Shown here: piece after piece, positions 27,901-58,092 of the stretch
Numbering within the stretch: the first letter of the stretch is position 1
How the letters are laid out: every line of letters starts with the position of its first letter
Source of the DNA: Oculina patagonica
Lineage: Eukaryota
Length of the DNA: 64,000 nt
Reading direction: 5' to 3'
Assembly (NCBI RefSeq): GCF_052425735.1
Contig: NC_135761.1
Coordinates: 63,364,001-63,428,000 of the forward strand
The notes under the pieces: model-generated
Database searches by the model: none
What the model was told of the DNA's origin: nothing
The model's input: the letters and a program-made list of their open reading frames with translations, nothing else
Program-made: the position numbers and the translations under genes

Positions 27901-27987
27901 NNNNNNNNNNNNNNNNNNNNNCAAAGAATGTCAAGAATGTTTGATGATAGCGCTGTTTCGGGTCAAGGGGTCATTGCAGACTTTGAT

Positions 27988-28699
27988 ATTTAATTTTCAT
28001 TTCATGCACACATGCCATATACACGTTGTAGAATTTACTGCAACAAGAGCAAGTAAAACATTTTCTAGCGAAATTAGAATTGCTCATTCGAATTTCACGT
28101 GGCTGGTAATTGATGCATTGCAACTCAAGACAACCAGAGACAACTTAATCGATAACACTAGATTTTAAAACACATAATAATATATTTTAAGCATACCTTT
28201 TTCATACGCTGTTTGCTTTGGAGAAGAGCGGCGAGAACTGTTTATGTTGATGGTGTACCATATTAATCGATGGGTTAATGTGTCGTCTTCATAGGTCCAC
28301 AAAACGCAAAAGTAGATTTCGCGCCATGGCTTGATATTTGGCGGGGAGTTAACTTGCCGCATTTCCCGCGCGTAAACATTATCCTTGGCTGCTGATTTTT
28401 TGTGGTTGTTTGGAGATTATCTTCCTTTAATGTTTGCAGTGAGAATACTTGCTTTCATCCTTGTTTCCATTATTCTTTCATTGAAGTAAATTATACTCCC
28501 TGCCCCGCCACAGACTGCACTGCATGTTAATTTTGACCAAATGATCTTGCACATCACCTCGTGATCTTTATTTGCACGGTTTCGCAATACACTGCTATTA
28601 ATTTGTAACAGAATGAAACGTGTACGGGCAAACGAGGAAATTAGATACAGAAAAAGCCAATGAAAACAAATTGGTGTATCGTCACCACCAATCAACGAT
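27988..28699 (+). repeat. Left long terminal inverted repeat (at least 712 bp; probably extends outward through 27922 into the gap)
   Basis: Reverse complement of 49227-49938 with about 5 mismatches seen by eye. The same spurious ORFs appear on opposite strands (28165-28362 vs 49564-49761). Degenerate similarity continues inward to about 28750. Confidence 0.95.
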
Positions 28700-28734
28700 A
28701 GACACATGTTACAAGCAGATTCACGGCATCTTTC

Positions 28735-30878: not shown

Positions 30879-33800
30879 TCACTCCTTGTACTCCAAAATT
30901 TCATGTGCGATTTCGTACCGCAGGTGGTCCACATTTTCCTGGAAAAGGCAAAAAAAATATTTTGTATGCGATTTACTACTGTTATGCACTTAGTGAGAAG
31001 TACATACCTCTTATTAATCGCGTTTGAGGGTTTGTATTTTAAAATACGGACCGAGTTTTTTTCTGTCTATTTATAGCGCAAGCGCGAAGCACATGTTCTC
31101 AAAAAGCCAATTTGGGTACTATGCTTATTACTAATGCGTTTCGTTTTTCTGGCAATGTATTTCCGTAAAAAAAAAATTAAGAAACCTCAAAATGGGGAAA
31201 CTTGTGCTAATCCATTCAAATAACTCACTGACCTGAGTAAAGTTTGGCTGTACTCCCTCCGCTAAGCATTTTGCTGTCTGTGAAAAAAATGTTGTAGAGA
31301 ACCGAATCTGAGAACACTGATATAAAAGATAAAACTTAAAAGTTTCATTTTAGCTACGTGCAAAGGCGGTTACTAGTGAAATACACTATATATAGCTTTT
31401 GGGACAGTGAAGAAGTGATTTAATGAAGTTTTTGGGCCATCATTGCTAGCGTTTTGATTGTTTCTTCAATTCAGTCAGGTTTCTATTTTTTTAAAAAAGT
31501 GTTTCATCCATATTCTTGAATGCGTTTTGCCATTCCATGTATTGCATTAGCATATAGTCTACTGAAACGCAAAATCTTTTTTCCATATTTTTTTTAAAAA
31601 AGATAATAATTATTATCAAACCTCTATCACAAACACTCCACAACTGGTATCGTCGAGTTGTTCCGGTCCTTTCATAACGGTGTCTTCCCAACGATCTAAT
31701 TGGGAAAATCCCTGAGCAGTCAAAAATTTCCTACAGAAAAAAAAAATGACGATTTTTCTGGAAAACAATATTTGCACTTTACATTCATATTTAGAAAGCA
31801 GAAAAACACATAATCCAGAGATTAATTCCGTATATCGATACTGATGTGAGTTCTAGAAATATTAATGCATGAGACAAACCTAATATTTTTGAAAACTGAC
31901 TGCTTTGGACCGCTCTGCTTACTGTCGTAAAACACAATCGCTTGTTTGATTCTGTCGGCAACCTATAGGAATTAAAAAATTTCAGGCTCTTAGTTCACAG
32001 TTAACCCAAAAGTAACTTGAAAAATCTGGCTAGATAAAAGACGGATCATATAATAACTAATGACCATGGATTCTAAGTACGTTGTCGGTTAACAGTCATC
32101 TGTATGCACTACCATAGTTTACAGATTAGTTTGCACCTACCGCAAGCACCCAATGAACTCCTTGTATATTGATTGGGAAGAGCAAAATCTGACTTGTGTT
32201 TAGACGGTCCTGTTGATCGAATTTGTTGTTAATACTGTTTCGTTAGATTACAGGAATGAGAGGTAAGGTGGGAAATAGTTTTCCATTGTGGCAACTCTAT
32301 GAGTAATTAGCAAATTTTAACATAACAGATTTGCGGTGCTCTTCTTGGATGAACTGTTGCTGTATTTGTTCATTAGGCAAGCATTTTTAGTTTTCATACA
32401 GTTGAGCGAAAGCGAACTACAGTGTAGGCGTAAAAGTGACACGCATCTTTTGGGATTTTTTTCCCGCTTTCACTCAGTAAGAGACCAGATGTGAACTAAA
32501 CTAACGCTTGATGCACTATTCGTCAGAAGGACGCTGGGCCAAGAGGTAAAACGTGAAAAGATATTAAATGAGGCGTGGCTGAAAGTAACATTTACCTGGT
32601 CAAACCATTTATCTAATTTAAGGGTACGGACGTCGCTTTTCAAACTGTTCAGTTTTGCGTAGAAGAAACTGGTGAACGACATCAGCCTTTTTCCCTGAAA
32701 TGAAATTCGCATAAATAATACACGGTCAAGCTGGATTCCTTGCATGAAATAAGTTTTAACGCAAAAAAAGACTTAATTGTCACCTTTCTGTTGCCCCGTT
32801 CCTCAATGATTTTGAAGGAAGCGTCTATTATCTAAGGAAATAATAACGGATTGTCAGTAGTTATGTTTAAGATCCGCAAATTTACTGTAATATATTTACC
32901 TCCATTTTTACTTATAAAAGCCCACAGTGTGATAAGTACAATGAAACTGCCTTCTTGTCTGTGCCAGGTGGGGGGGGGGGGGGGGTGGGGGTGGGGTAAG
33001 GGTTAGTTTTGTGAAAGAGTGACATAGCGGTGCCAGGCAACTAACCTTAAATTGGCAATGTTCTTTGTTAATCGACATGTTTTGACCTTGACCGTACGCA
33101 ACTAACACATTAGAAACGTCTATGTTTGGTAATTCATAGATAGCGATTTTTAATGCAGAACAAAAGATTAAACCACGCTAAAGAGAAAGGAAAAAGCGGT
33201 AATAACGGCCACCAGTGTGAATTGTACTTATTAAAAGAATCCCGATGATTCCCCAAAAATCAAAATTTTTCTGTTATTGAATGTAAACACGGAAGTATTT
33301 TTATTCCACGTCACTGAGATATTTGTCAATTACGTGATAAACTGAGTGAGAAATCCGCCTGAAATTACAAAAAGATTTCGGCCACCTAAAACATGTAAAA
33401 TCCGCCCATGTTGGCATGCATTAATATCGAATAATTTCCGAGAAACACTTAGTTTTATGTTTTCAGCAGCAACTTGATTCACAAATGATTTTCACCCGGC
33501 CTGTGCCTGGCACCACTATGTCTTCAAAGAAAAAAAAAAAAAGTGCAGACTTTCTTCCACGCCCTTGTGAGTTCTGCTAGTTTACTCCCATGTTTATAAC
33601 GGGGCGTGGTTCCGTGTACATCTTTCCCTTTTGTTCTCTTTATCGTACCTGATCGTTTAGCCATCCATCAATAAATGGCTTGGACATTTCGCGATTTAAT
33701 AGCAATTTGTCCTCATCTGTCACGGATGGCTGCACTGTCTTCAAATCTTTCAGAGTTATCGTAATATCTCTGATTTTCCTGATTTTTGTAGACAGACACT

Positions 33801-36800
33801 TGTTGTGAATTTCCCATGCTGATTCAACCTAAAGTTTTGTAAGAACAATGATCAGGAAAAATTAATTCCCATTGTTAGTGCTGTATATGCAGAATTTTAA
33901 GGAAATCTATCTGCATGAACTCACCTTTCTTCGCTTTCTATATGTTTTAAGGACCTCCCCATAATGGGCCCTTATGAGAGGAAGATTGTTTACGCGGTAG
34001 CCGGTCTTTCCTTGAAGGCTTACTTCAATTTTTCGCCTGAAGATGTCGTTGGCGGTTACCGTTTCGTCCGACCTCTTTTTAAAATCGAAGACCTCGCCAG
34101 GTTTTTGTTCGAGGTAGGCGACACGAACATTGTCTCCTTCTACACCCATTACTTTGGCAATGTAGAATTTGACAATGTGGAATATTGCCACCCACTCGTT
34201 TACTTCAGGTATGGAATGTTTCTGCAACAATAAAGAAATCACCTTTGGTTTTCAAATTAATTTGGATGCAAATAGAGACGTTGCATTTCACATGATGGTA
34301 TTGCTGATTGTTTGTCATAAAGACAACCAGGTAAATGTTGAACAGCATATAAAGCATATAATCTTGGTATTGTTGGTATTACCTTCTTAGTTTCAGTCTT
34401 TTTGGCATCCTGTATCGGAGGATCCACTACATTTGATTCCCCTGTCGGAAAACCCTCTACATATGAATCCTCTGCCAGAGGATCCATTGCATTTGATTCC
34501 CCTGTCGGAAAATCGTCTACATATGAATTCTCTGTCAGAGAATCCTCTGAATGTGGTTCCTCTTTGGAAGAATCTAGGTGCAGTGGATCCTCTTCCACAA
34601 TTTCTATCTTCTCCTCTCCTATTTCAGGTTCGTCTTTTTCTTCATTTGTTGGAATTGCCTACAGAATGTCGAGAATATGTAAATTTTTAATCGAGAAGAG
34701 TTAAATTCATTTTTAAGATGGCAAAAAAAATTTAATTTTTAATTTTTAACGGCAAAATTATGTTGTCATAAGTACCATTCTACGTCGTTTTTTCTTGGGC
34801 CCTACTGTAACATTATCAGGGCCGGCTTCCTTAATTTCATTGTTATCCTGTAAGAGCAATTGCAAAAATTGTCAAATAAGTTTTAAGTTTACAAATAACT
34901 GCTTCAGGTCATTTATATATTGCAAAAGTATTGTTGCCAACAAACATTGCTCAAAGGATCTATAACGCTCTCCACCGGATAAATCGCTGTGTAGATGTAA
35001 ACAAAGCCAACTACTCTTTTAACTATGGAATGCTTTTGCGTGTTATACAATGGCATATTGTAGGTCACAAATTACAATTCCTCCTTAATTTTCTGAAATT
35101 TGGTGTACTTACTTCGGGCATGTAATCCACTAGTGATGAAACATCCTCTAACAGGAGGTTAAACTTTGGTTTTACCTGTATGGATAAGAAACGAAATGGT
35201 GTTTTTTGAGGCTTTCAAGGTTATATGATTGTCAACTGGTTATTTGCAATTTGCCAAACACAAAATCTTGTCTGCTGTCCAGACTTCCTAGCCAGTTTTC
35301 CTTTTCGAAAAATAAAGAAAAAATGCTTCCTTCGTGGAAACTGTTTCTTGGCTAGTGGCTACTTATAATTTTCGTGCGTGTTTACTGATAAAAAATTTCT
35401 TATTGGACTTGGACAGTATCACGACCTCTTGCTAACATACGTTTAAGCAACAGCTATGTCGTAATAATCAATAGAGGCTATGATATTAATTACTTCGATA
35501 TTAGTTGCATCCGCCACAATCTGTCCCTCCTTCCTTCTTTGGGTTGTTTTCACCTGTACAAAATAAACAAACCGCAACATCGATACTGACTCAGAGAGAC
35601 CCTTGAGAGTTACGACCAATTTTGAAACGCGTACAGGTTCGTCCTCGTTCTGACTCGAATCTGAACGGAAGACATGAATTAGACTTCACAAGTTTGTATC
35701 GCATAATTTCTGAATGTCTTTAGCTAGGGCTGTAGCCAGGCTTTGATATATACGAGGCAAACGTTGCGAGCGCCGAATGCGCGAGCCGCAGGTGGGGTTA
35801 TGGGAAATTCTGAAATCGTGAAGCACTGAAACGCTATGAGGTATTTCTATAGAAAGAAATCATGAGGAATTTCTACAGAAAAAACGATCTCATTTATCTG
35901 GGAATTATTTTTGGCCTCTTGCAAGTTACGGCCCTGATTTAACAAATGCTAAGTCTGATAGATTGCATCCTGGTAGAGTGTTATTTGTATTTAATTTTCT
36001 AACTGATTACTGGTGCCGGGAAGCAAAACGCAAATGAAATTATTCCCTAATTTTGCGAGTATACCATTTGGTTACCTTTTATAATCGTTGCATGTATGTA
36101 ATTGAATACGCTCTTACCGGACGTACCTTTACTTTTTCTTTGCCCGTGATGCTTCCCTGACCGTGTTTGCTGCTTGCTTCCTTAGCCTTGATGGAACATT
36201 ACAAGAAGCACAGTAAATATATCACATGTTTGCGCTGCAGTACATTTACTCAGCAGATACAACTGACAAGGAAGCAAACTGGAACACTCGCTATTCTTTG
36301 TCTGATCAATCTACATTCATGATTGTACCCTAAACATAACAAATGTTAAAACAATAAAGCAAACTAGAGGCTTTTGCATGGCTACTTTATGCGTTAGTCG
36401 TAAGTTATCGGAAAGGAAGATTTTTTTAAAAAAATGGCAGCACCCGTCTTGGGCAACTACAATCGCTTGGTTACCTCATCAAGCGTACAGCTTTCCTCCA
36501 ATAACGGTTCTTTTAGTGACGCAATGGTTGTTTGGAGTTTTTCAATTCTCTATGACATAAAAAGACAACATTTTCCGAATTATGATTCGTCATCGAAAAT
36601 TTACACTACCGTAATTATTCGATTTAGCGCCCTCCTTCCAATAAGCGCCCCCTTCCGAATAAGCGCCCCCCTTCGAATGTGTTTTTGTAAATAAGCGCCC
36701 CTATTCCAATAAGCGCCCCCATTCTAATTAGCTCCCCCATTCTTATAAGCACCCCTATTCTAATAAGCGCCCCTATTGCAGATAACTGCCCCTACTGAAG

Positions 36801-39471
36801 TCATTGACGTCAACTAGATAAGCTCCTGACCGTTCACCATACAGTTCATGTATATATATTTCTACTAAAATGAACAACTATTTTAAAAGTAACAAAACTT
36901 TTAACAATTTCTTACTGTTACAGTTCCTTTTATTGTTAGATACATTTGGTTGTTTCTCAAAAAATTGAATAAGCGCCCTGTCCCGAATAAGCGCCCTGTC
37001 TCGAATAAGCGCCATCCCTTGAGGTACCAAAAGGAAATAAGCGCCCCGGGCGCTAAATAACTTAGTTGTGATTAGAAAATTTCGTGTATTAAATAGATTA
37101 AATAGTTCGCAAGTTATTTAACTTCACTGAGCCTTTAAACAGTTGCTGTGGTAAAAAGAGAAACTGGGAGTCTTTCGATATGGTCAATAAGTCATTTGCA
37201 GAACATGATTACGCGCTTGGTTAACACCTAGCTTTGGGTCGCTTGGTAGCAAACCATCCACGTGTGACGTCAGATAACAGCAGTTTGAGTGAGAGCGAGC
37301 GTGGCCATTCAAACGTTTTACAAGTTTTCTAGACCAGCCACTCCGAAAAATCTCCAACAACGTATCAATCATAAACATCATCGGGGCCCAACTGAAGTGA
37401 GCGTTCGTTTGATTGTGATATCGATGCAACTTGGTTCGAAAGTGAGGGGAGTCAAAGTAAAAAAAAAAACGTAACTAAAGCATTGGAGTAAGGAAACGAA
37501 ATGCATAACAACCCTCTTTGGGAGTACAGTGGTTCGACGTAGAAAAAGGTCTGTCCGTTACCTTGTCATAAAATTCTCGTAGGTCTTTCTCTCTGGAACG
37601 AAGCTCCTCCACAAAGTCTTGAATGCCTCGATTCTCCTGCAATAACTTAGACAAAAGGCAACACGGAATTAGCAACTGTTCTTTAGTACAAAATTGTATT
37701 TTGGTTTAAATCACTTTCGCTGCTGGGGTCGTAAAACTCAACCTTCTCAATATTTCAATATCGATTACATAATTGAGAAAAAACAAAGGTGTTACAGATA
37801 TAACTGTTAGCAAAAAATTAAAATTTAAACACATCTAAAAAGTACTGAGTGAATTTATACTGCTTTTATGTTGTTGGAAGGTTCTTTACAATCAGGCGCG
37901 CATTGGTCTGATGCACAATTTAAGGGCCACCTACAATTCTTTGATTCCTTTAAATTTGAAACCAAATCAAGGTCCTTTACATTTATCAATAAAGATAAAG
38001 AAATTGCTTTACTGCCTCCGAGTTGCCCAATTTTACAGTTAGAGCTGCATGATAAAACTCACTTACAGTTTGAATTCTTGTTCGAAGTCCAGCACTTGTT
38101 CTTTTTTCGTCTTCCAACTGCCCTTTGAGCTCGTTGATTTCCGTTCGCTGATTTGAAATCGAGTAAGAAATTATTTCACTTAATTTTACCTGGCCAGAAC
38201 TGGTAAGGACAATTCCGGGACATCAAACATGAATATTATAAATAATAATAACTTAATTCTTCATAATTTTATTCAAATGATAATAATGCAATGTACAGTA
38301 GATTTTGTCACATACCAATACTGCTACATCCTCTTCTTGGAGGTCAGCTTCATCTTGAGATGATTCGAGCGCTTCCTCAAGTTGTTCATTCTGATCTTTC
38401 TTCGCCTTGCCCTTAAAAGCAAACAGAAGCGCATGTCAGCAATGACTGATAGCCCCGCTCCATAAAACCGTAACATATGTACACTCTTTTTTATATAAGA
38501 ACGTCTAATTTTCGGGCAGACTCTGAGCGTCTCTTTTTTTTCGATTTGAGGATGAAAATGTTTTTAAGACATTCTTAAGTTACCTTATTTTGGTCTACGA
38601 ACGGAGATTTTCTACACATTGTATCATGCAAGAAGCAAAAAAAACATTGTTAAAGTATTTCCTAGTTTTCAGCATTGAGTAGCTGTGCCGTTAAACCACA
38701 GTTTTGCATTTATTTATACTGCTCATTTTGATAAATTAAAACAAATGGGCAAATTAAAATTTGGGTAAGTCTCAACCTCAACATTCTTATAAAAAAATGG
38801 TTCTTGTAAAAAAAAAATAGTGTTTATGAAGCTATTTTAACAGAGGTTTAGCATGGTTTCTGTTGGACAACAACTGTGAAATGAATAAAATGAGAAAAAT
38901 AGCTCACCGTCTTTGCCGTGTTAAGTTCTGTCAACTTCTTTTCGCCTCCTTCAATCACTTTTTGTAGAAGGTCATAAGCTTCCTCTTCAGGACACGACTG
39001 TTTCAGGAACTTAAATGTGTAGCTCGAGATTTTATGGCTTCTGCAATACTTAGCAGGATTGTTTGCTATTTGTGTCACCAAGGCAAAACATCGCCGACTA
39101 AGCCTAGCTATTTGCTGAATCTTCTTTAAGTCCTAAGTTAAAGTCAAAATTACACTGTAATTTCATGCAGAAATAAACAAATTAATCAATCAAGACAAAA
39201 ACTAATATTAAAAGGCAGAGGCGGTTTTAAAACTCACTTTTGGACCCAAGTGTCTCTCTATAAAAGCTGCCAAACGCTTGTCCAGATCTCTGTTTACACC
39301 ACGTCGAGGTAAATCGTACCTTTCAGGTGTCAGTGATAGGAAGCGGTACATCGTTTCTCGTAGAATATTTACCGTCGGCCAAAAATCTGGTGGTTGATAT
39401 GGTGTGCTTTCGGCAACTACTCTTCCAGCGGTACTGGTTGATGGAGCGATTGGAATAAAAAACTTGTTCAT
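30879..39471 (-). CDS. Ulp1/SENP-family (peptidase C48, clan CE) cysteine protease with coiled-coil, NLS and Tudor-like region, ~743 aa
   Basis: Minus-strand GT-AG exons: 39471-39238, 39132-38908, 38411-38316, 38147-38067, 37636-37562, 36186-36127, 35553-35494, 35175-35113, 34847-34776, 34658-34383, 34221-33925, 33828-33649, 32831-32784, 32694-32596, 32209-32141, 31962-31880, 31730-31622, 31277-31233, 30938-30879. The catalytic domain reads ITLKDLKTV...GWLNDQIIDA...SFTSFFYAKL...KWF...LLFPINIQGVHWVLA...IVFYDS...PEQLDDTSCGVFVIE...FTQENVDHLRYEIAHEIL. The N-terminal exon set is less certain (an acceptor also lies at 39493-39494, and extra small exons are possible). Confidence 0.85.
36607..37060. 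mobile_element. MITE fragment with AATAAGCGCCC subterminal arrays, in a protease intron
   Basis: Starts TACCGTAATTATTCGATTTAGCGCCC and contains many AATAAGCGCCC copies. Inverted GGGCGCTAAAT at 37048-37058. Confidence 0.7.
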
Positions 39472-41760: not shown

Positions 41761-41924
41761 GGAGTTAAACGAAAAAACTATGGGCACGTTAATATACGTG
41801 TCTCTGTCTATGGCCTTGTGTTTAATTGCGTATTGTATTTCTTTGCCTAACGCCCCGAGACGACTAATAGCGGTCCGTTCAAAGCGATATAGGTTATTTC
41901 ACACTTGACCTTTGCGTTACTCAA

Positions 41925-42230
41925 TAACTTCCGGAAAATTGTGATTGGACGAGTCAAGATCTTATTTACTGTTGTAGCCCCAAGTATTTAGACACGCGTC
42001 ACACGATTTTGGCGGGAACGTCACGAAATACAGATAAGCACAAACAACACTCTGGGAAAACAATAGTTATTATCTAGCTAGGGTACCATTGGCGGAATCA
42101 GGAACTAATGTACTTCACTTTCCATTAACACAAAGAGGATACGAAATGGCGGGAAAGTCAACTTTATACGACCCTTTGTAAGTGACAGCATGGTCACTTT
42201 GTAGCAGACATCGACGCTCTCGCTTCGAAC
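41925..42230. promoter_or_regulatory. Putative bidirectional promoter between the protease and transposase genes, with E2F-like sites
   Basis: TTTGGCGGGAA at 42008-42018, TGGCGGGAAA at 42147-42156, TTGGCGGAA at 42089-42097, plus ACTTCCGGAA (ETS-like) and GATTGG (CCAAT) near 41927-41948. It lies between divergently oriented genes. Confidence 0.45.
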
Positions 42231-45200
42231 ATGGCGATCAACAAACTCTGGAAGATAGATATACTCTTGGGCTGTTTTGTATTGTTGATTGTACTTATAG
42301 CACTTCGCTTCACTTCAAAACTGGCAATCGATAACCCGCCAGAAAACAATTCTTACAATAGAAGTGAGGAGACCCGACAAACCTTTTCCGGAGACGATCT
42401 TCGCACACGTAGTGAACACGGTAAACAAGATGGTCCAGGAGGCGACGATTTCCGCCCGAGATTTCCATTTTTTTACTGGGAAACCTGGGATTTTCCTGTG
42501 CTTACAACACTGGACATTCTGGGAGAGGAACTGCGAGCTATTGCTCGTCAAGCTGCCAAATCGCCATCGATTGCAAGTAAACAAGACCTGGAGGAAAACG
42601 ATATCGTTCTTTCGTCTGCAGCCGGGACAGTTGTAGGCGACCAGGTACATAGTTAAATTTCAATTTTTCTACAGTAGTAGTAGTAGTGGTAGTGGTAGTG
42701 GTAGTGGTAGTAGAAAGTAGTAAACTTTATTTAAGTGTCAATCGTTCTAGCGTTTTACACACTAATTGGTGACACTAATTACAAACTAAGATAAACATTA
42801 AAATTTTGAGAAAATTGAAACCCTTATTCTAAATAAAACTCTAGTTAAAAACATGTTTAAAAAACATACACTTATTCTAAATAAAACTCTAGTTACAAAC
42901 GTACTTAAAAAAACATACACTAATTACATAATTACGATCACTTTCTAAATTAACTATTGCATAAATAACAGTTCTTGCATCTCCCGTCTTCAATAAAGTG
43001 CGTTGAACACGATTTGACTTTGTTGTTCTGGTTACAGCCACAAGTGTTACGACTACGTGGAGGAGCAAGAGGTAGCAAGAACGTAAGTTATTTTTATCAC
43101 CTGCTCCCTTTGTAGTACATTTGTCTTCTTGTACCCAAAATTAAAAGTTTCCCTCGTAAAAACCTTTTACATTTCTACAAGTCTTCACTAACATTTCTGG
43201 GGACATCCGTGAAAAGCAATTCAATCATTGTATAACATTTCATAGCAACGATAGACTGCGATAAAGAAAGAGGAAAAGATGCTCCTGAGGAGCATGGTTA
43301 CTAACGATCTTTTTTCTTACCAGAGTGAAACGTCTGACGTAAAATGTGGTTGCGGTGGGGCATGCAATCATGGCATTGATGATGATTATGATGTAGAAAT
43401 TGAGGTCAGTCAGTGTATTGTAATCATTTAGTACAATTTAAACAGTTACGATGTTTAAGGTGTATATTCATGACCTGATGGGGTTGAAATGACACAACAA
43501 CAATAAATTATTGAACGTATGTGATACAAAGGGTCTCTATACAAAAGACAGCTCCGTGGTTTGGTCTATTGACCCTTTCTAAGAATGCTTATCATAACCT
43601 TACATTGACTTAAAAATTAAAGTTAGAAATAACGCGTGCGTAGCATTGCAGAAAAAAAAAAAAGGAAAAAGCCTGATGATTGTCTTTTGAATTATCTAAA
43701 TGTGCCTGTTTTTCGTTTTTTCAGGAAGATTGGAGAGATGATATAAAGGAACCTGCTTGCTTTGGATTGGATGGAAGTTTCGATGAAGATCGAAGGGTGA
43801 GTCTTTTCATAGTCACTTTAAGGGTGCTCTATTTCATTGATACTCAAATAATATTTGATCTATTTCTCCCTTCATATATTCTTAATTATACACTAAAATA
43901 TGCAGGCCGCTTCGCGGCATTGGTTCAATTGGAATTAATCTTACTGACTGACAACAATCAAGTTGGCAGACAACAGTTACTTTTGGGTCAAGCATGTCTT
44001 GGGCTTCCCGGGGGCACACTTTGAGGAGGCTTCGCCGGTGGTCAGAAGCTAATAGCCAGATTAGGACACCACAACGCACTATCAAAGTTTCACCGATTTA
44101 ACGAGATGCACAAGAATGCAGTCCATTTCGAATGTAGTGTCAGACTGAACGTTCTCCTTCTTAACATATTCAACATATCATGCTATGTCAAACTAAGGCT
44201 AAAAGATTTTTATGCTTCTTGTTTTTTCTCAGGATATAGTGAATGATTTTCCTTCTCCTGAATGCGATGTAGACAACACGATGGGCAAAGCAAAGCAAAC
44301 AGAAAAGCACCCTGTTGCGAAGAAGCAACCTGAAATAGCCAAGAGGCACAAGACAAAAGAAAATATGAAGAAAAGCAAAGTCAATTACGCCAAAGTGGAA
44401 AAAGAAGTGAAATTGGGTAACTGCTGCCACAAAAAATGTATACGAAGAAAACTTTCAATATCAGACGTTTATGAAACAAGACAAATGTTCTTCGACAAGT
44501 CACAGGAACAGCAAAGAGCCTATCTAATTAACTTCTTTCAGATTAGTCAGAGATCGAAAAACGGAAGAACGGTGTACGCCCACTATGTAAACGGCAAAGA
44601 AGTATGTCAGAAGGCCTGGATATTTAGCCATGGAATGGCATATGGGAGGTACGCTATATTTTTTTCTTTAGAATACAAACGTAACATAAGGAGGAGACAG
44701 GCTAGCAGGCTTACTTGCGCTAATGATAACTAACATTAATTTTTCTAACGTAGCTCTGTCCTCAGGGATAACTTTCCTTTTAACATCATTTTATATATAC
44801 TATGGTTGCTTGCTATGTTGTGTTTTAACAGATACCATAATTGGAAGCGCGAGGTTGAGAAAAAAGGCACAACACAAAGCTATCACTGTCGCGAAGGAAT
44901 GGTCTACAAATCCAAACGCACACTGGAAGCGGAACTTTGGTTTGACGAATTCGTGTCTACTTTTGCCAACATAATGCCTGACGTCAATAGGAGGGAACTA
45001 CCTTCGTGTATGACTATTTGCCAAATTCACAAAATGTATCGTGAGGCAATTAAACGTGCACCCTTAAGCTTAGCGCAGTTCAGACGAATGTGGAAACAGA
45101 ACTTCAAGGATGTAATTATACCTAAGGTAAGATGATGTAATGATAAAATAGAAATTGATTTTTTTAGTCGACGTTGTCGTCAGCGTCGCTGCATGTAAAG

Positions 45201-48200
45201 GTCCCTAATAGGAAGCCCAGGCAAGCTAAGCCGAGAACGGCCACGAGAACGTCGCCAAAGAAAACGTTTAATGAGCTTGAAATCTTGAAATCCTAGCCGT
45301 TCTCATTGAGACAACTACGTGAAATGACCCAATTCTGCGTATTTTGGAGAACGTGCGCCACGGCGGCTTTTTTACTTTTTCGATATGGGGTTGAACGCTC
45401 TCCCAAAATATCCAGCTGCAACTAGTCCGTGAACCAAAAGATACGCTAAATATGTCTAGATAAATCCTCTGCTTCGCCTTTATCATCGCTTGAGCTCCTT
45501 ATAATTTGACTGTCGCGACGTAATGAAAACGCTAGATTGCAAAAAAAGTTGTTATCTTTATTTCTTGCAGACAAACAGATTTTCTAAGTGTGGTGTTTGC
45601 TTGTTGATAACTGAACACATTCGCGGTACTGGAAATAAAAAGGCGAGATTAACATGGACAGAAAGAAAACAATGGCACATGAATCAACAGGCGTAAGTGT
45701 TACATAAAAAGAGTTTTCTGGCGAACAGGGTACCTGAAGAGATCTATTGAGCATAGGCTTGAGTTTTACTACCTCCAGATACTTTAATTAACCTATAGTA
45801 ACCAAACATTAACAACCAAGTGGACGATGGCTTAGATATAGTCCTTTACAAGAGTTATTCATTATAATATATGTCTTTATACAGAAATGAAAGGAAGAAG
45901 TATTATAAACATCAGAAGAAAGCCGAGAAGGATCCAGGAAAATATATGTCCATAATCATTGACGGAATGGATCAAGCGAAGACCTATTTGCCACACTGGA
46001 TACAAAGTTCAAAGGTTTTTTTTAATACTAATAAATTTCGTTTTTGTTATAATAACATATATTTTGAGTCTAAGACTGGTTAAAAAACAGAACACTTCTA
46101 TTGTACAGCCTTGGTACAGGGTTATTTGCACGTCCTCTGCATCTCACAATTTTATGTAACTTCGACTGCTTTGTTATTAATTATGCAGTTGGAGGGTGAC
46201 AATGCTCATTTCTTAAAGACACACGTGACTGGCACCTTGTCCCATGGGCACGGTTTAGCACTTTGTTTCCTTGACCTGATGCGGTGGCCACAAGATGCAA
46301 ATCCTACAACAAACGCGTTGATATCCACATTTCGGCATGTTATTAAAAAGGTAAACAGTTTTACACATTAAAGAAAATCGCTGTTTCTTATAAACTACGT
46401 TGACCTATTTCTTATATTTATTTGTCCACGCAATTAACACTTATAAATAAAATTATTATTATTATTAATGATGGAGCTTGTTGCAGCTAAGTTACCCTAC
46501 TTTTCCATGCACCTATTTTAGCAGTTAAATTGCAATTTATTAAATTGCATAGAATGAAGCCTGAAGAGATATCAGAGCTTCAAGCGGAGCGGACAGAAGT
46601 TTATGTTGAAACACTCGTAGTCAACGTCATTCAAAATGATCGCAGTTTATCTATGAGACTTCTAATGACTTCAGTTTTGCATAGCTCTATTGCCATGTGT
46701 TGCTAAACATTTTTTTTTAAATAATCATTTTATAGCGGGGAAGCTTGCCTCCAGTGTTGTACCTACAGCTCGATAACTGTTACCGTGACTGCAAAAATAT
46801 TCATATTCTTGGGTTCTGCGCCCTTCTGGTAAAGGCTGGAGTGTTTCGAAAGGTGAATAAAAGTACTTTTTCATCTTATATTGGTGACGAGATGAAATGA
46901 CACTCAAAATCGTCTTATATCTATATTTATAGGTTCGGCTGTCATATTTGGTAGTGGGGCACACTCATGAGGACATCGATCAGGTACCATTGAACAGAAC
47001 TGCAAATACACTCCAACCCCGGCCTACAAAACGGCCAGTACCGAAACGTTCATCAAAACACCATTGTAAAAAAAATTCTTTGTGGCGGCCTCGCATAAGG
47101 CGGCCGCGGCCACCTTTCTGCCGTCCCAATTATGCGGCAAACGCGAGCTAACTTTTCATTTTGATGCCTTCTAATCGAATTCTTAAATAAATCTCTACGG
47201 AAAATAGGGGGAAAATCAAACTTTTACGACAAACAGGCTGATTACCGCGTACAAACGCCAAACGCGGCAGACGGAAGAAGTGGAATTTTTGCCGTTCGCG
47301 GAAAAAAAACAAACGTAATGCTTGATCTTTCTATTGCCTCAATTTAGCGGCCAACAAGAAGGTAACAACAAGCTCGAGAAAACAAGTATCTAAAATGTAA
47401 GGGGGCGACTGATAAAATCATTAAATATGACGTGAAGTTTCTGAAAGCAAGTAGTCGATTAAATTTTTTTTTTCTTTTGTTTTACACGGAAACACTGACA
47501 TATAAATGAAATGTTGTTTTCTGTCCTGCAGATGTTCAGCAGAATTGCCGAAGCCCTAAGAAAGGTAGATGCTGTCACCATAGACCAGCTTAGGAAAGTC
47601 ATTCACACTTCCTATACGCCATCTCCGGATGTTTTTTATCGGGAAAACATTTACGACATAAAGTCATGGTTGCGACCATATACAGCAACATTTAAACACC
47701 ACAGCAACCCGCACGCTTTTCGTTTCAACCTGAATGAAGATGGCGAAGTGGAGATGTCGTATAGGAATTGGGCAAAGGCCGAAAAGAAGGAATGGCTTCC
47801 GAAAGAAGGTCCTTTCATCATTCTTCGCGAACTTCCACCTGGTACCCCGTCCATCCTAAAACCAGATAACGTAAAGTGCCCCACGGAGGAAGCGATGGAA
47901 AATAGTGTACGTCAAGTTCAAAAGCGTATGACTCCACAGGACCTAGCTTGGTGGAAAGAGTTCATCACCGGTGAAAAACAACGAAGAGAACAGTGGCAAG
48001 CAATGAAACCAGAAGATTATAAGGAAGCAGGAAGGAATTTCGACTTGTTGAAAATGAAATACGTAAGCCCCCCTTCCGGAGATGAGGAAGCAGATGAAGC
48101 ACATAAAAAGAGGGAGAAGGACCTACAAGACCTGATGCAAAAGAAAAACAGCTTCCCACCGGTAAGGAAAGATGTACTGCCGATATTGAACTTTGAATTA

Positions 48201-48663
48201 CCGTACATCCAATTCACAAATTTCTTTCGTCTTGTAAGGCTCACACCTAATAAAATCACGCTGGCAACGACACCCCCTCCCCCCCCCCCCCCACACACAC
48301 ACACACACCTCCCTGCACATCGGTAGAAAAACGTGAAAGATGAATTCTTCATTAGCAACCACACCTGACTGACCTAACTCAGTTGTTAAGTTATACCCAG
48401 GATAGATAAACAGATGAACCAAGTTATATGCTTTTGTGTAACTCCTTTCAGTTTTTGTAAAAAGTCTCATAAGGTAAATGAATTGTGATGCACAGGTGCA
48501 GATGACAAAGAAAGCGGTTGGCGGCAAGGACAAGGACCGAGGAACAAAGAGGAAACGTGCAGAAAAAACGTGTGAGAAGAAAACAAAAGGAAAAGGAGAA
48601 AACATTGAGAAAAAACGTGTGAAAAGAAAACAAAAGGAAAAGGCACCAAAAAATAAACAGTAA
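42231..48663 (+). CDS. Spliced DDD-type DNA transposase (Sola1-like/DUF7869-type), ~900 aa, with an N-terminal hydrophobic anchor and LRLRGG motif
   Basis: GT-AG exons 42231-42644, 43038-43082, 43324-43404, 43725-43796, 44233-44648, 44832-45126, 45571-45692, 45885-46014, 46189-46350, 46736-46852, 46933-46983, 47532-48161 and 48496-48663 total 2703 nt in one frame. Motifs: CCHKKC...VCQKAW, FSKCGVC, KYMSIIIDGMDQAK, HVTGTLSHGHG, LYLQLDNCYRDCKN, SYLVVGHTHEDIDQMFS, and a basic tail. AATAAA at 48669-48674. The core (exons 5-12) is secure; joining exons 1-4 to it is a prediction. Confidence 0.85.
42673..42722 (+). repeat. (GTA/GTG)n microsatellite in transposase intron 1
   Basis: gtagtagtagtagtggtagtggtagtggtagtggtagtag. 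Confidence 0.85.
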
Positions 48664-49226
48664 ATTGTAATAAAGTAAAAAAAAAATGCAATCATTTAAC
48701 AAGACGAAAATACCTATATTTGACTTATAAAATACCACGTTAAGAGCACTGACAGCACCAGAGGCTCTTTTCTTTTCGCGACGATTTGAAGGGGAAGGAG
48801 GGGGTGGGCTTCATGTAAAGGGGCAAAAATAATGCCGCACAAAGCAATACATCTGACACCTAGTGAGGTCGAGGAATATGAAAAAAATATTAGGATACAT
48901 CAATTATTATACTAACTACTATATTCTTTGACTGTTAAACAAGTCTTCGAATATTTGTAGGCATTAACATTCAAAATCGCGAAGTTAGACCAGCAACATT
49001 TACACCTTTCAAACGGTTTTCCTGTTACTTTTTCAAGTACCGCGAAAGATGTACAAACCATTTTCACGATATCCTAGTTGCGATACGACAATCTCAAATA
49101 TGGGGTAATTAAGAATACATTATCATAAAATAATCCCTCATGAAAAAAAGCAGGTGCGGCGAATATCCTCGCCTTCGCGTACTGCAATGTCATGAACAGT
49201 GAGACATTTCAATGTAATATGTATCG

Positions 49227-49938
49227 ATCGTTGATTGGTGGTGACGATACACCAATTTGTTTTCATTGGCTTTTTCTGTATCTAATTTCCTCGTTTGCCC
49301 GTACACGTTTCATTCTGTTACAAATTAATAGCAGTGTATTGCGAAACCGTGCAAATAAAGATCACGAGGTGATGTGCAAGATCATTTGGTCAAAATTAAC
49401 ATGCAGTGCAGTCTGTGGCGGGGCAGGGAGTATTATTTACTTCAATGAAAGAATAATGGAAACAAGGATGAAAGCAAGTATTCTCACTGCAAACATTAAA
49501 GGAAGATAATCTCCAAACAACCACAAAAAATCAGCAGCCAAGGATAATGTTTACGCGCGGGAAATGCGGCAAGTTAACTCCCCGCCAAATATCAAGCCAT
49601 GGCGCGAAATCTACTTTTGCGTTTTGTGGACCTATGAAGACGACACATTAACCCATCGATTAATATGGTACACCATCAACATAAACAGTTCTCGCCGCTC
49701 TCCTCCAAAGCAAACAACGTATGAAAAAGGTATGCTTAAAATATATTATTATGTGTTTTAAAATCTAGTGTTATCGATTATGTTGTCTCTGGTTGTCTTG
49801 AGTTGCAATGCATCAATTACCAGCCACGTGAAATTCGAATGAGCAATGCTAATTTCGCTAGAAAATGTTTTACTTGCTCTTGTTGCAGTAAATTCTACAA
49901 CGTGTATATGGCATGTGTGCATGAAATGAAAATTAAAT
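49227..49938 (-). repeat. Right long terminal inverted repeat
   Basis: Reverse complement of 27988-28699; ends at the gap that begins at 49939. Confidence 0.95.
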
Positions 49939-50445
49939 NNNNNNNNNNNNNNNNNNNNNNNNNNNNNNNNNNNNNNNNNNNNNNNNNNNNNNNNNNNNNN
50001 NNNNNNNNNNNNNNNNNNNNNNNNNNNNNNNNNNNNNNNNNNNNNNNNNNNNNNNNNNNNNNNNNNNNNNNNNNNNNNNNNNNNNNNNNNNNNNNNNNNN
50101 NNNNNNNNNNNNNNNNNNNNNNNNNNNNNNNNNNNNNNNNNNNNNNNNNNNNNNNNNNNNNNNNNNNNNNNNNNNNNNNNNNNNNNNNNNNNNNNNNNNN
50201 NNNNNNNNNNNNNNNNNNNNNNNNNNNNNNNNNNNNNNNNNNNNNNNNNNNNNNNNNNNNNNNNNNNNNNNNNNNNNNNNNNNNNNNNNNNNNNNNNNNN
50301 NNNNNNNNNNNNNNNNNNNNNNNNNNNNNNNNNNNNNNNNNNNNNNNNNNNNNNNNNNNNNNNNNNNNNNNNNNNNNNNNNNNNNNNNNNNNNNNNNNNN
50401 NNNNNNNNNNNNNNNNNNNNNNNNNNNNNNNNNNNNNNCTTAGTA

Positions 50446-54387: not shown

Positions 54388-54928
54388 GGGCCTGTTTACA
54401 AGCAGGTAGGGTAACCCTAGGTGCTAGGGTTACCCTAGCAAGAGGGTTAGAAGATAGCCCGGGTTTACAAGCAAAATTCGCAGGTAGGGTAACCCCACTT
54501 ACCCGGGTCAACTTACACCGGTTACGCTTCAGTTAACCTTGTAAAATTTTGTCGTTAGAAACTGTTATTCGAAAATAATTCCGTTCCAGTGCAAAAATAC
54601 GACAAATTGTGAATGAACACGATGTTTCTTGGTCACAATTCGCTGTTTTTGTCGGTATTTTTAAACATATTTAGCTTTTTGGAGCCAAAATAAAGTTGTC
54701 CCGGGGTAGGCGAGTTATCCCTAGCAGAGCGTTTACAAGGCGCTAGGGTTACCCTAGCAGCTAGGGTAACCCTAGCACTCAGCTAGGGTTACCCTAGCTG
54801 CTAGGGTAACCCTAGCGCCTTGTAAACACGTCGATGAAAAAAAGAAGAAATGTGGGAGCGCTAAGGTAACCCTAGGTGCTAGGGTAACCCTATGTGCTAG
54901 GGTTACCCGCCTCCTTGTAAACAGGCCC
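54388..54928. mobile_element. PIF/Harbinger (Tourist-like) MITE
   Basis: TIR GGGCCTGTTTACAAG ... CTTGTAAACAGGCCC; TAA TSD at 54385-54387 and 54929-54931; internal CTAGGGT(A/T)ACCCTAG palindromes. Confidence 0.9.
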
Positions 54929-55157: not shown

Positions 55158-58092
55158 CAGTTCGGATGTATTCCAATTCTGGAAGAAAGCGTGACGTCAC
55201 TTTTCTATTGTTCTTGCGAAAATATACAAAAATCGACCAAAATAATAGAGAGAAATTGGTGCCTTATACATAAAGTTGTCTACCAGTCTCTACGCGCAAT
55301 ATCCGGGAACTTTGAGCAGCAATTCCAGTGAAACAAAGATGGATGCCAATTCGGTCGCATTTGGGCGAGAATAGAAGGTTTGGAAACGGCAATTTAAGCA
55401 ACGAAAAGATCGCGGATCGTGGAGACCGCCGCCATGATGGCGGACTTGAAATGTAAGTACCTAGATTTATGTTCTGTTTTCCCTTTGATGGAGAATTTTG
55501 TAGTCAAAGTGAACAATTTTCCTCGAATGTGTCGTTGTTCATTGTTGTTTTTCTAAAGTTTCGTCGCTGGTAACCACCTAGGAAAAATGGTAACACTTTT
55601 TAAAGTTGATCGCTTGGATGCATTCCTTAGTGCGTCGCTTTGATGATGAGCAGAGACCTAAAGTTCGCTCCGATAATAGCGAACGGGGCAAATGTTTTGG
55701 CATTTTTACGGCATTAGTTCGAAATGAAGATTCGTTTAAGCACATCTGAAGGTGTGAAAAAATCATTCAGAGTACAGGGACTTGGTTTTTACTTTTTCTA
55801 CTTCGAAATGAACTTGAAAGTGTTTTTCAAATCGCTGGTTTAAAGTTTACTGATGAGTATATTTCATGCTCCTTGTTAAATGTTGTTACGTTTGTGTTGA
55901 TTCTCTCCACTGAAATGGAATGGAGAATCATTCTCAAATTGTAGAGAACTACATGTAGAACTCTTGGCGCATATAACATGCAGACTCTTCCAACAGCAAA
56001 TATCCCTACTGTGGCAACAAAATGTGGCTAATAAAGGGCTGAAAATGTTAAAGAAGGAGGGGAGATGTATGTGCAGATTGGCTTGCAAAAAAATTTAAAA
56101 AAAAATGTGCAAGAGGGGTAGCAACAAGATGAATTGCCATTTTAATTTTTATCATTTTTTCCAGTGCTCTCTGATAAGTTATTGCAGGCCATTATATGCA
56201 TGTTAGGGACAGGGCAGTAAAATTTCTTGTTTAGTGAATATAGTCTCTGGGTTGTGTGCCACTTATTGTTTGAGAGGTTGCCTATTTACCGAGTTAGGAT
56301 TTTGAGTTGGATTTTGAGTTAGGATTTCCAGTTGGATTTTCGAGTTGCTTACCGTACTCAACACTAAGGTTAGCCGACTACGCACGCCAGTTAGCCTACT
56401 ATGCACTCCGGTTAGCCTACTATACACTCCGGTTAGCCTACAATACACGCCGGTTAGCCTACTATACACTCCGGTTAGCCTACTATACACTCCGGTTAGC
56501 CTACTATGCACTCCGGTTAGCCTACTATACACGCCGGTCCGCCTACTATGCACTCCTGTTAGCCTTCTACACACTAGTACTCCTGTCAGCCTACTATTCA
56601 CTTTGGTTAGCCTACTTTGCACTCCGGTAAGCCAATTTAAGTTTGGCTTTCATTAATTGTAATGGGTTTTGCTTTGTCAAAAAAAAAATCCTGACTCGAA
56701 AATCCTAACTCGAAAATCCAACTTGAAAATCCAACTCGAAATTCTTACTCGAAAATCCAACTCGAAAATCCAACTCGAAATCCTAACTCGGTTGTTAGTC
56801 TGTCTCAAGTCTTTTCACAAAGCTTTTTTCTAACTTTGTATCAATGTATAACAATTCATTGTTGTTTTTATATTACTATTTTTGTTTATAAAGTTGAGTG
56901 TTTTTAAAAGTCCATTCATTCCTTCAGAACTAAAAATGAGGTCAATATATGCTCAGTTATGAGTGCAAGTTAAAGTTAAAACTGTTTTTGTGATTTGTTT
57001 GTAGGTGGATGGAGGAACAAAGAGGAAAAAGGAATTGTAAACTATTGTTGTTGAATAAAACACCAGTGTCCTGACACATTCAAAACGAAAATACTTTCTT
57101 CTCTCACGTGTGCAGTTTAATGTAGACAACAAGAGCAAATTTGCTATTCCCAGACTTAAATGAACTGAATTACAACCAAGGATTTTTCAATTTGTAGTCG
57201 AAAAAGACCCTCTTGGACACTCTGGAATCTGTGAAAGAATTTTCAAGAAATATTTTGGTATGGAAAATGTTCTGCTGGCATGAACATAAAGATTTTTTCA
57301 TGTTCTTTACCCTTTGGTAATAACTTGTATATTAGCACAGAATCGAATTCTTTCGGTTAAGAGGGGAATAATTCGTAGCTGCAAAACAATTTCAATGACC
57401 AACATTTATTGTACCACCATGACATTTTATTATTGATTAAAGCATCGGTAAATAAGACTCCAACACTGGAAGTAAACTGCATTTTTAATATCAAGCTCTT
57501 TTGCTCCTTTTCTGGCCGGGCAATACAATGTACAAGATATAAACCCTAACACAATAATATACATAAAAACTACGAACGGGATAAAAGTTTATAATAGTCA
57601 ACTCAACATGGGCCAAACGAGGTCGGTCAAGAGCGACGCGTTCGCGTTTTAAAAGTCAATCGAATCTCTCGGCAAGATTTGAGCACGTTCAACGTCGAGA
57701 AAAGCGCAAGAGTTTCGAGAGAGAGCGGGATTTTAGGCAAAACGCGAGCAAAAGTCTGTTGACAAAATTAATTTTCCTCGATATGTTCGCGCTTACATGA
57801 TTAAAGATTAAATAAAACGGAGGACTTACGAGAAGAGACAGCGAACTACCGTCAATTTTATGGAGGTAAGAAGCTTGTTTATATCGTCAAAGCCTCGACC
57901 ACGATGAAGAAGAAGTCTGCGGCATGAAATTTATAAAAAAATCGATATATACTTTCCTTGTGGTTGTCCGCCATCTTGAATTTGCTACCGCGAAACATGT
58001 TATGAAATGCGATCCACTGTTTTGATCAGTGGCGTTTCGTGACGTAAAACAATTGTTTTCGTTTCTTCCAGAAATGGAATCCAACCGAGCTG
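55158..58092. mobile_element. Non-autonomous DNA transposon, 2935 bp, with CAG...CTG termini and a 5-bp TSD
   Basis: 31-bp TIR: CAGTTCGGATGTATTCCAATTCTGGAAGAAA vs the right-end reverse complement CAGCTCGGTTGGATTCCATTTCTGGAAGAAA (4 mismatches). TTGAC at 55153-55157 and 58093-58097. Removing the element restores the host reading frame. Confidence 0.88.
56288..56792. repeat. 21-bp minisatellite (~12-13 copies) flanked by inverted 12/13-bp repeat arrays (nested MITE-like)
   Basis: CCGGTTAGCCTACTATACACT units at ~56368-56633. ACCGAGTTAGGATTT... at 56288 is mirrored by ...AAATCCTAACTCGGT ending at 56792. Confidence 0.85.

Follow-up and report, generated by a model that had tools for sequence, protein, structure and literature searches.

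A hydrophobic leader and a ubiquitin-tail mini-exon precede a putative DUF7869 transposase in corals, with a C48/Ulp1-like protease gene nearby

Why should a transposase-like gene of a coral carry the last residues of ubiquitin on a mini-exon of its own? The question is raised by a locus of Oculina patagonica, which was analysed in a window of 64,000 nucleotides (contig NC_135761.1, forward-strand positions 63,364,001 to 63,428,000; coordinates below are those of the window, and related loci and proteins are denoted by L and P numbers). An initial annotation had proposed that a transposase is made here as a precursor, consisting of a membrane anchor, then VLRLRGG with a cut before the following alanine, then the enzyme. 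We consider it very probable that the architecture itself is genuine: an anchor and a ubiquitin-tail mini-exon precede an enzyme with a DUF7869 core. This architecture is conserved and previously undescribed. The mechanism that we infer from it, in which a tethered enzyme encoded by a three-gene unit is cut after Gly-Gly, is a tentative reading that falls just short of an even chance.

The sequence of the window is that of a eukaryote: its introns are of GT-AG type, and its G+C content is about 38%. On the plus strand, an ATG at 42231 with an in-frame stop immediately 5′ of it opens exon 1, which runs for 138 codons to a gt donor. It is followed by a 45-nucleotide phase-0 mini-exon, exon 2, with the flanks ttacag↓ and ↓gtaagt (arrows mark splice sites and, further below, scissile bonds). 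The translation of the mini-exon is PQVLRLRGGARGSKN, in which LRLRGG (43047–43064) forms residues 142–147. What the initial annotation had stated about exon 1, the mini-exon, the position of LRLRGG and the splice flanks was found in the window as described. Exons 1 and 2 join in frame, via two further small exons, to the DUF7869 body. The full model comprises 13 exons and an intact reading frame of 900 residues in which every splice junction is GT-AG, those at exons 3 and 4 and from 44233 onward being both GT-AG and phase 0; 753 residues lie behind Gly147, in agreement with the remainder of about that length proposed earlier. A scan of the 1.6 kb between exons 1 and 5 looked for open pieces in phase 0 that have a good donor and an acceptor rich in pyrimidines. 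Four candidates with good splice sites emerged: the three small exons already proposed and a longer version of the mini-exon. The junction between exons 12 and 13 (donor ccaccg↓gtaagg at 48161, acceptor cag↓ at 48495) is less certain; positions 48476–48568 are conserved in the relative L001.

Exons 2, 3 and 4 (45, 81 and 72 nucleotides) are symmetric, in phase 0-0, so that the frame survives the skipping of any of them; an isoform without LRLRGG is possible by this route. The C-x-C-G-G-A-C-N-H/C motif of exon 3 and the acidic run behind it are invariant across the coral lineages and absent from the gene of Nematostella, and the motif may form a small metal-binding knuckle. Intron 1 holds a (GTA/GTG)n microsatellite (42676–42712); the locus L016, which is 90–95% identical to the window, lacks the surrounding 42675–43002.

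Do exons 1–4 belong to the mRNA of the transposase-like protein? It could be argued that they form a separate small membrane-protein gene, or match by chance, and that the transposase-like protein starts at ATG 44281. Database callers do give exon 1 only as stand-alone open reading frames (ORFs), and a Porites evermanni annotation lacks the leader. The eight homologues of exon 1 found among 1.84 billion (1.84e9) representative proteins are, however, ORF-style calls of 132–164 residues that end a few codons beyond a conserved Q↓gt donor, and on every contig of sufficient length that carries one a DUF7869 ORF lies downstream on the same strand. In L001, a relative of 58% identity, nucleotide similarity is limited to the 5′ flank and the exons, and the mini-exon is an isolated conserved island (43026–43089) in an otherwise unalignable intron. 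The opening of exon 5, D[IAV]V[ND][DE]FPSP, is conserved and lies upstream of ATG 44281. That ATG (residue 221), once named as a possible alternative start, did not hold up: it is absent in the other lineages, L001 having no Met there, while the sequence before it is conserved. In Nematostella vectensis, isoform X2 of LOC5513564 and an older JGI model join a 38-residue hydrophobic exon to a 25-residue mini-exon, which ends in LLRLRGSGGL↓gt, and this to a body with CCxxxC and DUF7869; isoform X1 retains the intron between the hydrophobic exon and the mini-exon. The exon-only conservation, the conserved phase-0 junctions, the coding conservation 5′ of ATG 44281 and the spliced Nematostella models together uphold the proposal that exons 1–4 are part of the transposase-like mRNA, and a separate gene or a chance match is highly improbable.

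Three observations on these gene models may be added. The genomic sequence of Porites evermanni (CALNXI010000451.1, L017) contains at 8017–9133 a leader exon, a mini-exon with VLRLRGG and an exon with CxCGGAC; the public DUF7869 model (P0034, labelled 'partial') starts too late and omits all three. The Nematostella DUF7869 gene (L015; P0040, P0148 and P0149) contains an in-frame tandem duplication of 22 residues, with MFSRISGGLKRKNAETIDALRR occurring twice right behind HTHEDVDQ, and its RefSeq isoforms terminate early; this gene may be decaying or domesticated. An in-frame Met at 44365–44367 (residue 249, in ENMKKSKVNY), about 18 residues before CCxxxC, is conserved in four of five lineages and could be the start of a leaderless isoform.

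The ubiquitin-tail motif recurs in each of the intact coral lineages compared. VLRLRGG matches ubiquitin residues 70–76 at all seven positions in the window, L014, L016 and L017, and (V/C)LRLRGG stands at the homologous position in the window, L016, L002–4, L005–6, L011–13, L014 and L017, and is thus shared by six intact, deeply diverged coral lineages. The mini-exon reads PKVLRLRGGAQGSQN in L016, GCLRLRGGGSK in L002/3/4, GCLRLRGGGRK in L005/6, GCLRLRGGGKK in L011/12/13, QVLRLRGGSKVQKK in L014 and SVLRLRGGSRK in L017. Each copy has a phase-0 acceptor before it and a donor right behind it, and the mini-exon remains symmetric while its length ranges over 45–66 nucleotides. All six codons of LRLRGG vary synonymously and none nonsynonymously among the intact lineages (for example TTA CGA CTA CGT GGA GGA, CTG AGA CTG AGA GGA GGT and CTC AGG TTA CGA GGT GGA). 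Exon 1, in contrast, shows 29–58% identity with saturated synonymous sites, and a ratio of nonsynonymous to synonymous substitution rates (dN/dS) of about 0.26–0.48 where dS is unsaturated. In each lineage the residue behind the second glycine (P1′) is Ala, Gly or Ser, and none has Pro there. By chance, a six-frame translation of a window should contain LRLRGG about 0.01 times, and one copy was observed; this low expectation, and the finding that the motif occupies the homologous position in every related locus that extends far enough, exclude a chance match.

The leader combines the motif with a hydrophobic segment. In the window the stretch IDILLGCFVLLIVLIALRF covers residues 9–27 and extends to residue 29, giving a 21-residue helix (residues 9–29, 42255–42317). 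An uncharged segment of 19–25 residues with a mean Kyte–Doolittle value of 2.3–2.9 was present in 10 of the 10 leaders scored, and the leader of L017 also carries a hydrophobic segment. AlphaFold2 (AF2) modelled exon 1 (predicted local distance difference test, pLDDT, 54) with a confident helix at residues 3–34, where the pLDDT is 65–88 by block (78–88 over residues 11–30); the rest of the exon was modelled as a disordered stretch and two low-confidence helices, with no strands. The N-terminus is thus predicted to form a signal-anchor-like helix. Conservation of a transmembrane (TM) helix together with LRLRGG in homologous transposases, which the initial annotation had left to be checked, was found across the intact coral lineages, with LRLRGSGG as the Nematostella variant, and the pattern of substitutions supports purifying selection on both. 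Among 68 other long DUF7869 proteins a hydrophobic N-terminus was seen in Nematostella only, and the remainder start with an acidic region that resembles the one behind LRLRGG. The leader would accordingly be an add-on module, since other long DUF7869 proteins lack it. A search for annotated proteins sharing the Nematostella leader returned the query alone.

Does the tail belong to a ubiquitin? The motif could end a ubiquitin-like domain that has diverged strongly yet still folds, or be what is left of a captured ubiquitin, and ordinary host deubiquitinases (DUBs) would then cut there as they cut UBA52, RPS27A or the ubiquitin insertions of pestiviruses. The seven-residue identity would fit such an origin, as would the distance of about 72 residues from the PFF patch to Gly-Gly, which is near the length of ubiquitin. 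Three tests, run on the residues of exon 1 alone, went against it: the leader had no match to the Pfam ubiquitin family (PF00240) at E ≤ 1, ubiquitin was absent among the PDB matches of a profile of exon 1, and the AF2 model contains only helices, at low confidence, and no β-grasp. The earlier remark that the leader is not an obvious ubiquitin fold agrees with all three, and a ubiquitin-like domain is very unlikely.

The body of the protein was assigned to DUF7869 (PF25273) by four exon pieces that scored 27.9–80.2 bits against a cutoff of 26. In an 80-sequence alignment D31, D115 and an H151–D157 block are conserved; the Asp of DGMDQ (exon 8), the Asp of DN in DNCYRDCKN (exon 10) and H-T-H-E-D-I-D of GHTHEDIDQ (exon 11) are invariant or near-invariant. 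The AF2 model of a relative of 51% identity (P0020, pLDDT 88.5) has the RNase-H-like order βββαβαβ. Foldseek matched it exclusively to enzymes of the RNase H fold (retroviral integrase cores, IstA, TnsB, EndoV and PIWI); these matches are weak (E of about 1e-2), with probabilities of up to 0.98 for foamy-virus integrase cores. A PDB sequence search with the DUF7869 core gave nothing useful. From the modelled fold and the acidic triad, it is a reasonable inference that the protein is DDE-type transposase-like. The family is large, comes from marine invertebrates only in the matches seen, and is multi-copy in many invertebrates; nearly all of its named matches are labelled 'uncharacterized' or 'hypothetical'.

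Is there a protease at hand? The initial annotation had invoked an element-encoded one, and a linked C48/Ulp1-like gene was located at about 34.7–31.5 kb on the minus strand. It was recognized via an annotated neighbour of the Porites evermanni DUF7869 gene, which lies about 10 kb upstream on the opposite strand and whose 307-residue product has PF02902 (Peptidase_C48) on record, and was then confirmed in the window; the first exon of the Porites gene is homologous to 33910–34251 on the minus strand. GVHWVLA, FYDS and PEQLDDTSCGVF lie on consecutive exons with GT-AG flanks, and the His, Asp, Gln and Cys motifs follow one another in canonical order, by which the gene looks intact. The 38-residue His exon matched PF02902 with E 0.0013 (19.0 bits; the whole-domain cutoff is 20.7). 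No start codon was found in frame, and a PDB sequence search with the protease exons gave nothing useful. The exons are collinear in L011 and L012. An acidic exon-like ORF (34260–34658, minus strand) with 30-nucleotide tandem repeats (34407–34556) lies directly 5′ of the EWVAIF exon and is probably the N-terminal part of the gene. Earlier scans had found no peptidase: neither Pfam searches with ORF pieces of at least 45 residues from 28.7–42.2 kb on both strands, with pieces of at least 36 residues from 1–20.8 kb of the plus strand, or with the large ORFs and the partner-gene exons, nor a scan for a 'DCG' motif. The exons measure 38–46 residues, and the catalytic motif is SCG. An ORF at 1358–1822 (plus strand) with a sub-threshold match to SENP3_5_N (E 0.015) was rejected as the protease, being 40 kb away with no C48 catalytic exons nearby on its strand.

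Between the protease and the leader–DUF7869 gene, and head to head with the latter, lies a partner gene that showed 38–58% (mostly 44–58%) identity to L002 and L005 in tblastx and 37% to a gene of Nematostella (L015, 1134–4405, 451 residues, no Pfam on record), and that has homologous ORFs in L017. It had no Pfam match and no protease signature; some of its exons are coiled-coil-like. The layout of protease (minus), partner (minus) and leader–DUF7869 gene (plus) was found in the window, L011/L012 and L017, that is, in all three lineages with enough upstream DNA, the other loci ending before the expected position of the protease. The co-occurrence of TM helix and LRGG with the protease, which had been suggested as a check, was thus seen in three of three. 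The unit may include a fourth gene, an ORF of 279 residues immediately inward of the left inverted-repeat arm (28735–29574, plus strand), whose N-terminal half is acidic and which matches a C2H2 zinc finger weakly, below the cutoff (E 0.008).

The reading that we prefer is as follows. The DUF7869 enzyme would be made as a membrane-tethered precursor that starts with an anchor helix, continues with some 110 residues of poor order and has, directly before the enzyme, the bare C-terminal tail of ubiquitin. The precursor would be cut after Gly-Gly, between Gly147 and Ala148, the likeliest cutter being the clan CE enzyme encoded within the unit, in the way that adenain and the proteases of African swine fever virus (ASFV) and poxviruses cut LxGG↓x or GG↓x sites; alternatively, a host enzyme of the ZUFSP/ZUP1 type that accepts a bare RLRGG peptide could serve. 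The 753-residue enzyme so released would have an acidic, Cys-rich start like that of its leaderless DUF7869 relatives and a Lys-rich, nuclear-import-like end. From the sequence evidence, cleavage at the motif by one protease or another is marginally favoured, and cleavage by the linked C48 protease is possible but somewhat doubtful. Ordinary DUBs would be poor candidates because the leader has no ubiquitin body and most DUBs require a folded S1 ubiquitin (PMC8776766); the host DUB of the initial annotation thus loses in likelihood, unless it is of the ZUFSP type.

Several observations weigh against this reading. The N-terminal flank of the helix has a net charge of +2 to +3 in eight of ten leaders (0 and +1 in the other two); it is at least as positive as the C-terminal flank in nine of the ten, and strictly more so in seven. 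An N-x-S/T sequon lies 10–16 residues past the helix in 10 of 11 leaders, that of Nematostella included and that of L017 excepted; the sequons of the window are NNS (42345–42353) and NRS (42357–42365). This pattern suggests exposure to the lumen. Charges and sequons together would make the helix a type II anchor, a topology first raised as a caveat and now favoured by both features; LRLRGG and the enzyme would then be lumenal in the endoplasmic reticulum (ER) and beyond the reach of cytosolic proteases. C48 enzymes, like most DUBs, normally need a ubiquitin body, and the leader has none. The protease call consists of one sub-threshold Pfam match, motifs read by eye and an annotated homologue, in a gene whose start codon was not found. 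The di-glycine is interrupted in Nematostella, which reads LRLRG-S-GG, and in L001, the one coral exception, which reads LRLRG-RA-GG (LRLRGRAGG) and is decayed, having a frameshift and stops within exons; the invariant core may therefore be LRLRG and not the di-glycine. As a separate observation, the sequon is kept though the leader sequence around it is poorly conserved.

The interrupted glycines could mean that no cleavage takes place: LRLR(G) would then be a sorting or binding motif, for ER retention or an RGG-type contact, by which the full-length protein is held at the membrane, and an isoform without the leader would supply the nuclear enzyme. The consensus for arginine-based ER retention is Φ-R-x-R, which LRLR fits on inspection; Nematostella and L001 keep LRLRG, and such isoforms could arise from the Met at residue 249 or from the symmetric exons 2–4. 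This account is unlikely, though it has to be reckoned with. Despite synonymous saturation, neither of the glycines changes in the six intact coral lineages and a hydrophobic residue always precedes the motif, a constancy that exceeds the needs of R-x-R; coding conservation extends upstream of Met249; and a linked protease of the di-Gly class would be left without a role.

The charges and sequons could also be taken at face value, as in NRF1/SKN-1A: a type II anchor, lumenal N-glycosylation at the juxtamembrane sequon, retrotranslocation and a later cytosolic cut at or near LRLRGG would precede entry into the nucleus. The precedent has the same order of parts, with an N-terminal TM helix, a lumenal glycodomain, extraction by p97, NGLY1 and cleavage by DDI2 at residue 104 (PMC7279161). 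We consider this route distinctly unlikely, since the topology is a guess from sequence, a sequon is missing from the leader of L017, the protein is not homologous to CNC-bZIP proteins and a round trip through the lumen would be costly for a cysteine-rich enzyme of 870 residues. If it were true, activity would be coupled to ER or proteasome stress. The conflict between topology and cleavage after Gly-Gly could be resolved, by analogy, either by such a route or by a leaderless isoform, made from the Met at 44365–44367 or by skipping symmetric exons. In its most far-reaching form, our preferred reading would have the element license its own transposase, the ER-tethered or ER-lumenal enzyme being kept from the nucleus until the Ulp1-like protease of the element has cut the ubiquitin-tail mimic, possibly after stress-dependent retrotranslocation; we regard this version as speculative and unlikely.

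Table 1. Coordinates of the features of the leader–DUF7869 locus in the window.
Feature	Position	Strand	Basis or remarks
Conserved 5′ flank / 5′ untranslated region of the leader–DUF7869 gene	41898..42230	+	With exon 1, 73% alignment to L001; introns unalignable
Exon 1, leader, residues 1–138	42231..42644	+	Helix, sequons, DD..PRFPFF aromatic patch, two low-confidence helices
Exon 2, mini-exon, phase 0-0	43038..43082	+	Conserved island in comparison with L001; acceptor and donor in every lineage
Exon 3, phase 0-0, C-x-C-G-G-A-C-N-H motif and acidic run	43324..43404	+	Kept in L001, L002, L005, L011, L014, L017
Exon 4, phase 0-0, acidic linker	43725..43796	+	Aligns to L001; found in splice-site scan
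Exon 5, starts DIVNDFPSP; basic stretch, CCxxxC motif	44233..44648	+	tblastn against L002, L005, L011, L014
Exons 6–12, DUF7869 core	44832-45126, 45571-45692, 45885-46014, 46189-46350, 46736-46852, 46933-46983, 47532-48161	+	PF25273
Exon 13, Lys-rich C-terminal tail resembling a nuclear localization signal, and stop	48496..48663	+	Less certain junction
C48/Ulp1-like cysteine protease gene	31494..34658	-	Motifs, PF02902, GT-AG flanks, L017 homologue
Protease, N-terminal EWVAIF domain exon	34197-34150	-	Motif
Protease, PFIDGWLNDQ	33678-33649	-	Motif
Protease, FTSFFYAKL	32694-32632	-	Motif
Protease, His motif ILLFPINIQGVHWVLA	32188-32141	-	PF02902 match
Protease, Asp motif IVFYDS	31962-31909	-	Motif
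Protease, Gln/Cys motif GPEQLDDTSCGVFVIE	31669-31622	-	Weak SENP5 match of Cys exon
Protease, last exon with stop	31559-31494	-	Terminal exon
Partner gene	37556..39468	-	Conserved exons 39468-39238, 39159-38947, 38150-38058, 37657-37556
Left arm, 726-nucleotide 99% inverted repeat	27988..28713	.	Abuts N gap 27422-27921
Right arm, same inverted repeat	49213..49938	.	Abuts N gap 49939-50438

Is the unit an element? All three genes lie inside the pair of inverted-repeat arms. Both arms end at gaps of 500 N, and their true length and outer ends are therefore not readable; the repeat could represent the terminal inverted repeats (TIRs) of an element of about 22 kb, two copies of another repeat or an effect of assembly. 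A search for TIRs in L002, L005 and L011 found none, which leaves mobility conjectural. The decayed copies (L001, with its frameshift and stops, and L016, with a frameshifted exon 1) and the multi-copy nature of the family argue for a unit that is, or recently was, mobile. L011 and L012 show 98–99% collinearity that breaks off some 2 kb beyond the gene, and at one side only; this does not separate haplotigs from copies. Elsewhere in the window, dense tandem and inverted repeats with 21- and 13-nucleotide periods were noted at about 56.3–56.8 kb (56288–56792), and palindromic GCTAGGGTTACCCTAGC units at about 54.4–54.9 kb (54402–54912); both are unrelated to the leader–DUF7869 gene.

The literature searched contained no mention of DUF7869 or PF25273, of its motifs or of LRLRGG in connection with a transposase, nor was a membrane-anchored transposase, or one with an LRLRGG site, reported there. 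If the self-licensing version is true, the Ulp1/OTU proteases of many eukaryotic DNA transposons would for the first time have an identified substrate and function, and coral transposition would be tied to ER or proteotoxic stress. Confirmation of the preferred reading would add a new layer to transposon self-regulation, namely precursor tethering and licensed release, together with a natural bare RLRGG processing site in a cellular setting and a first functional handle on a large uncharacterized family of marine invertebrates. As the Ulp1-like gene travels with its putative substrate, the function of a transposon Ulp1 becomes directly testable by co-expression.

How does this arrangement compare with known systems? 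Proteases of clan CE process viral precursors at (M/L/I)xGG↓x (adenovirus adenain), GG↓x (ASFV pS273R) and AG↓x (poxvirus I7), and the protease of Polinton/Maverick elements is adenain-like. As in these systems, a single element would here encode a clan CE protease and a protein with L-x-G-G followed by a small residue, with no ubiquitin fold ahead of the site. The protease is, however, of C48/Ulp1 type and not C5, C63 or C57, the putative substrate is an anchored DDE-type enzyme and not a capsid or core polyprotein, and its cleavage is a predicted one. Ulp1 and OTU domains are widespread on DNA transposons (Ginger1, MULE/KI-MULE and Helitron), where their substrate is not known and ideas on their role are speculative (PMC2836005). 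The present locus likewise pairs a transposase-like gene with a Ulp1 (PF02902) protease in a cnidarian. In contrast to those families, the protease is a separate gene and not a C-terminal domain of the transposase, the enzyme is of DUF7869 and not integrase-like or MuDR, and the partner protein bears a candidate cleavage motif, none being reported for those families in the literature searched.

Ubiquitin-fusion precursors (UBA52, RPS27A and polyubiquitin, and the insertions of cytopathic pestiviruses) are cut after LRLRGG by DUBs. They share with the coral protein an identical VLRLRGG immediately before the cargo and a P1′ residue that is never Pro; in the coral protein, however, a hydrophobic helix comes first and 140 residues separate the motif from the N-terminus. 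Since the fold test failed, the protein is not counted as a member of this class. The core of ZUFSP-type cysteine proteases cleaves bare RLRGG faster than folded ubiquitin, R-x-R being held by two salt bridges (PMC8776766). Such a eukaryotic enzyme would be a candidate host cleaver, although it has no link to the locus and belongs to a clan other than that of the linked C48 gene. NRF1 (NFE2L1)/SKN-1A resembles the predicted precursor in its N-terminal TM helix, juxtamembrane N-glycosylation site, cleavage site about 100 residues downstream and nuclear product (PMC7279161); it differs in having no sequence homology, in being cut by DDI2, an aspartic protease, at W↓L and not at a di-glycine, and in its cargo, which is of nuclease fold in the coral gene. 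By analogy, the coral system would work most like clan CE precursor processing combined with ubiquitin-fusion processing, in a layout that recalls NRF1.

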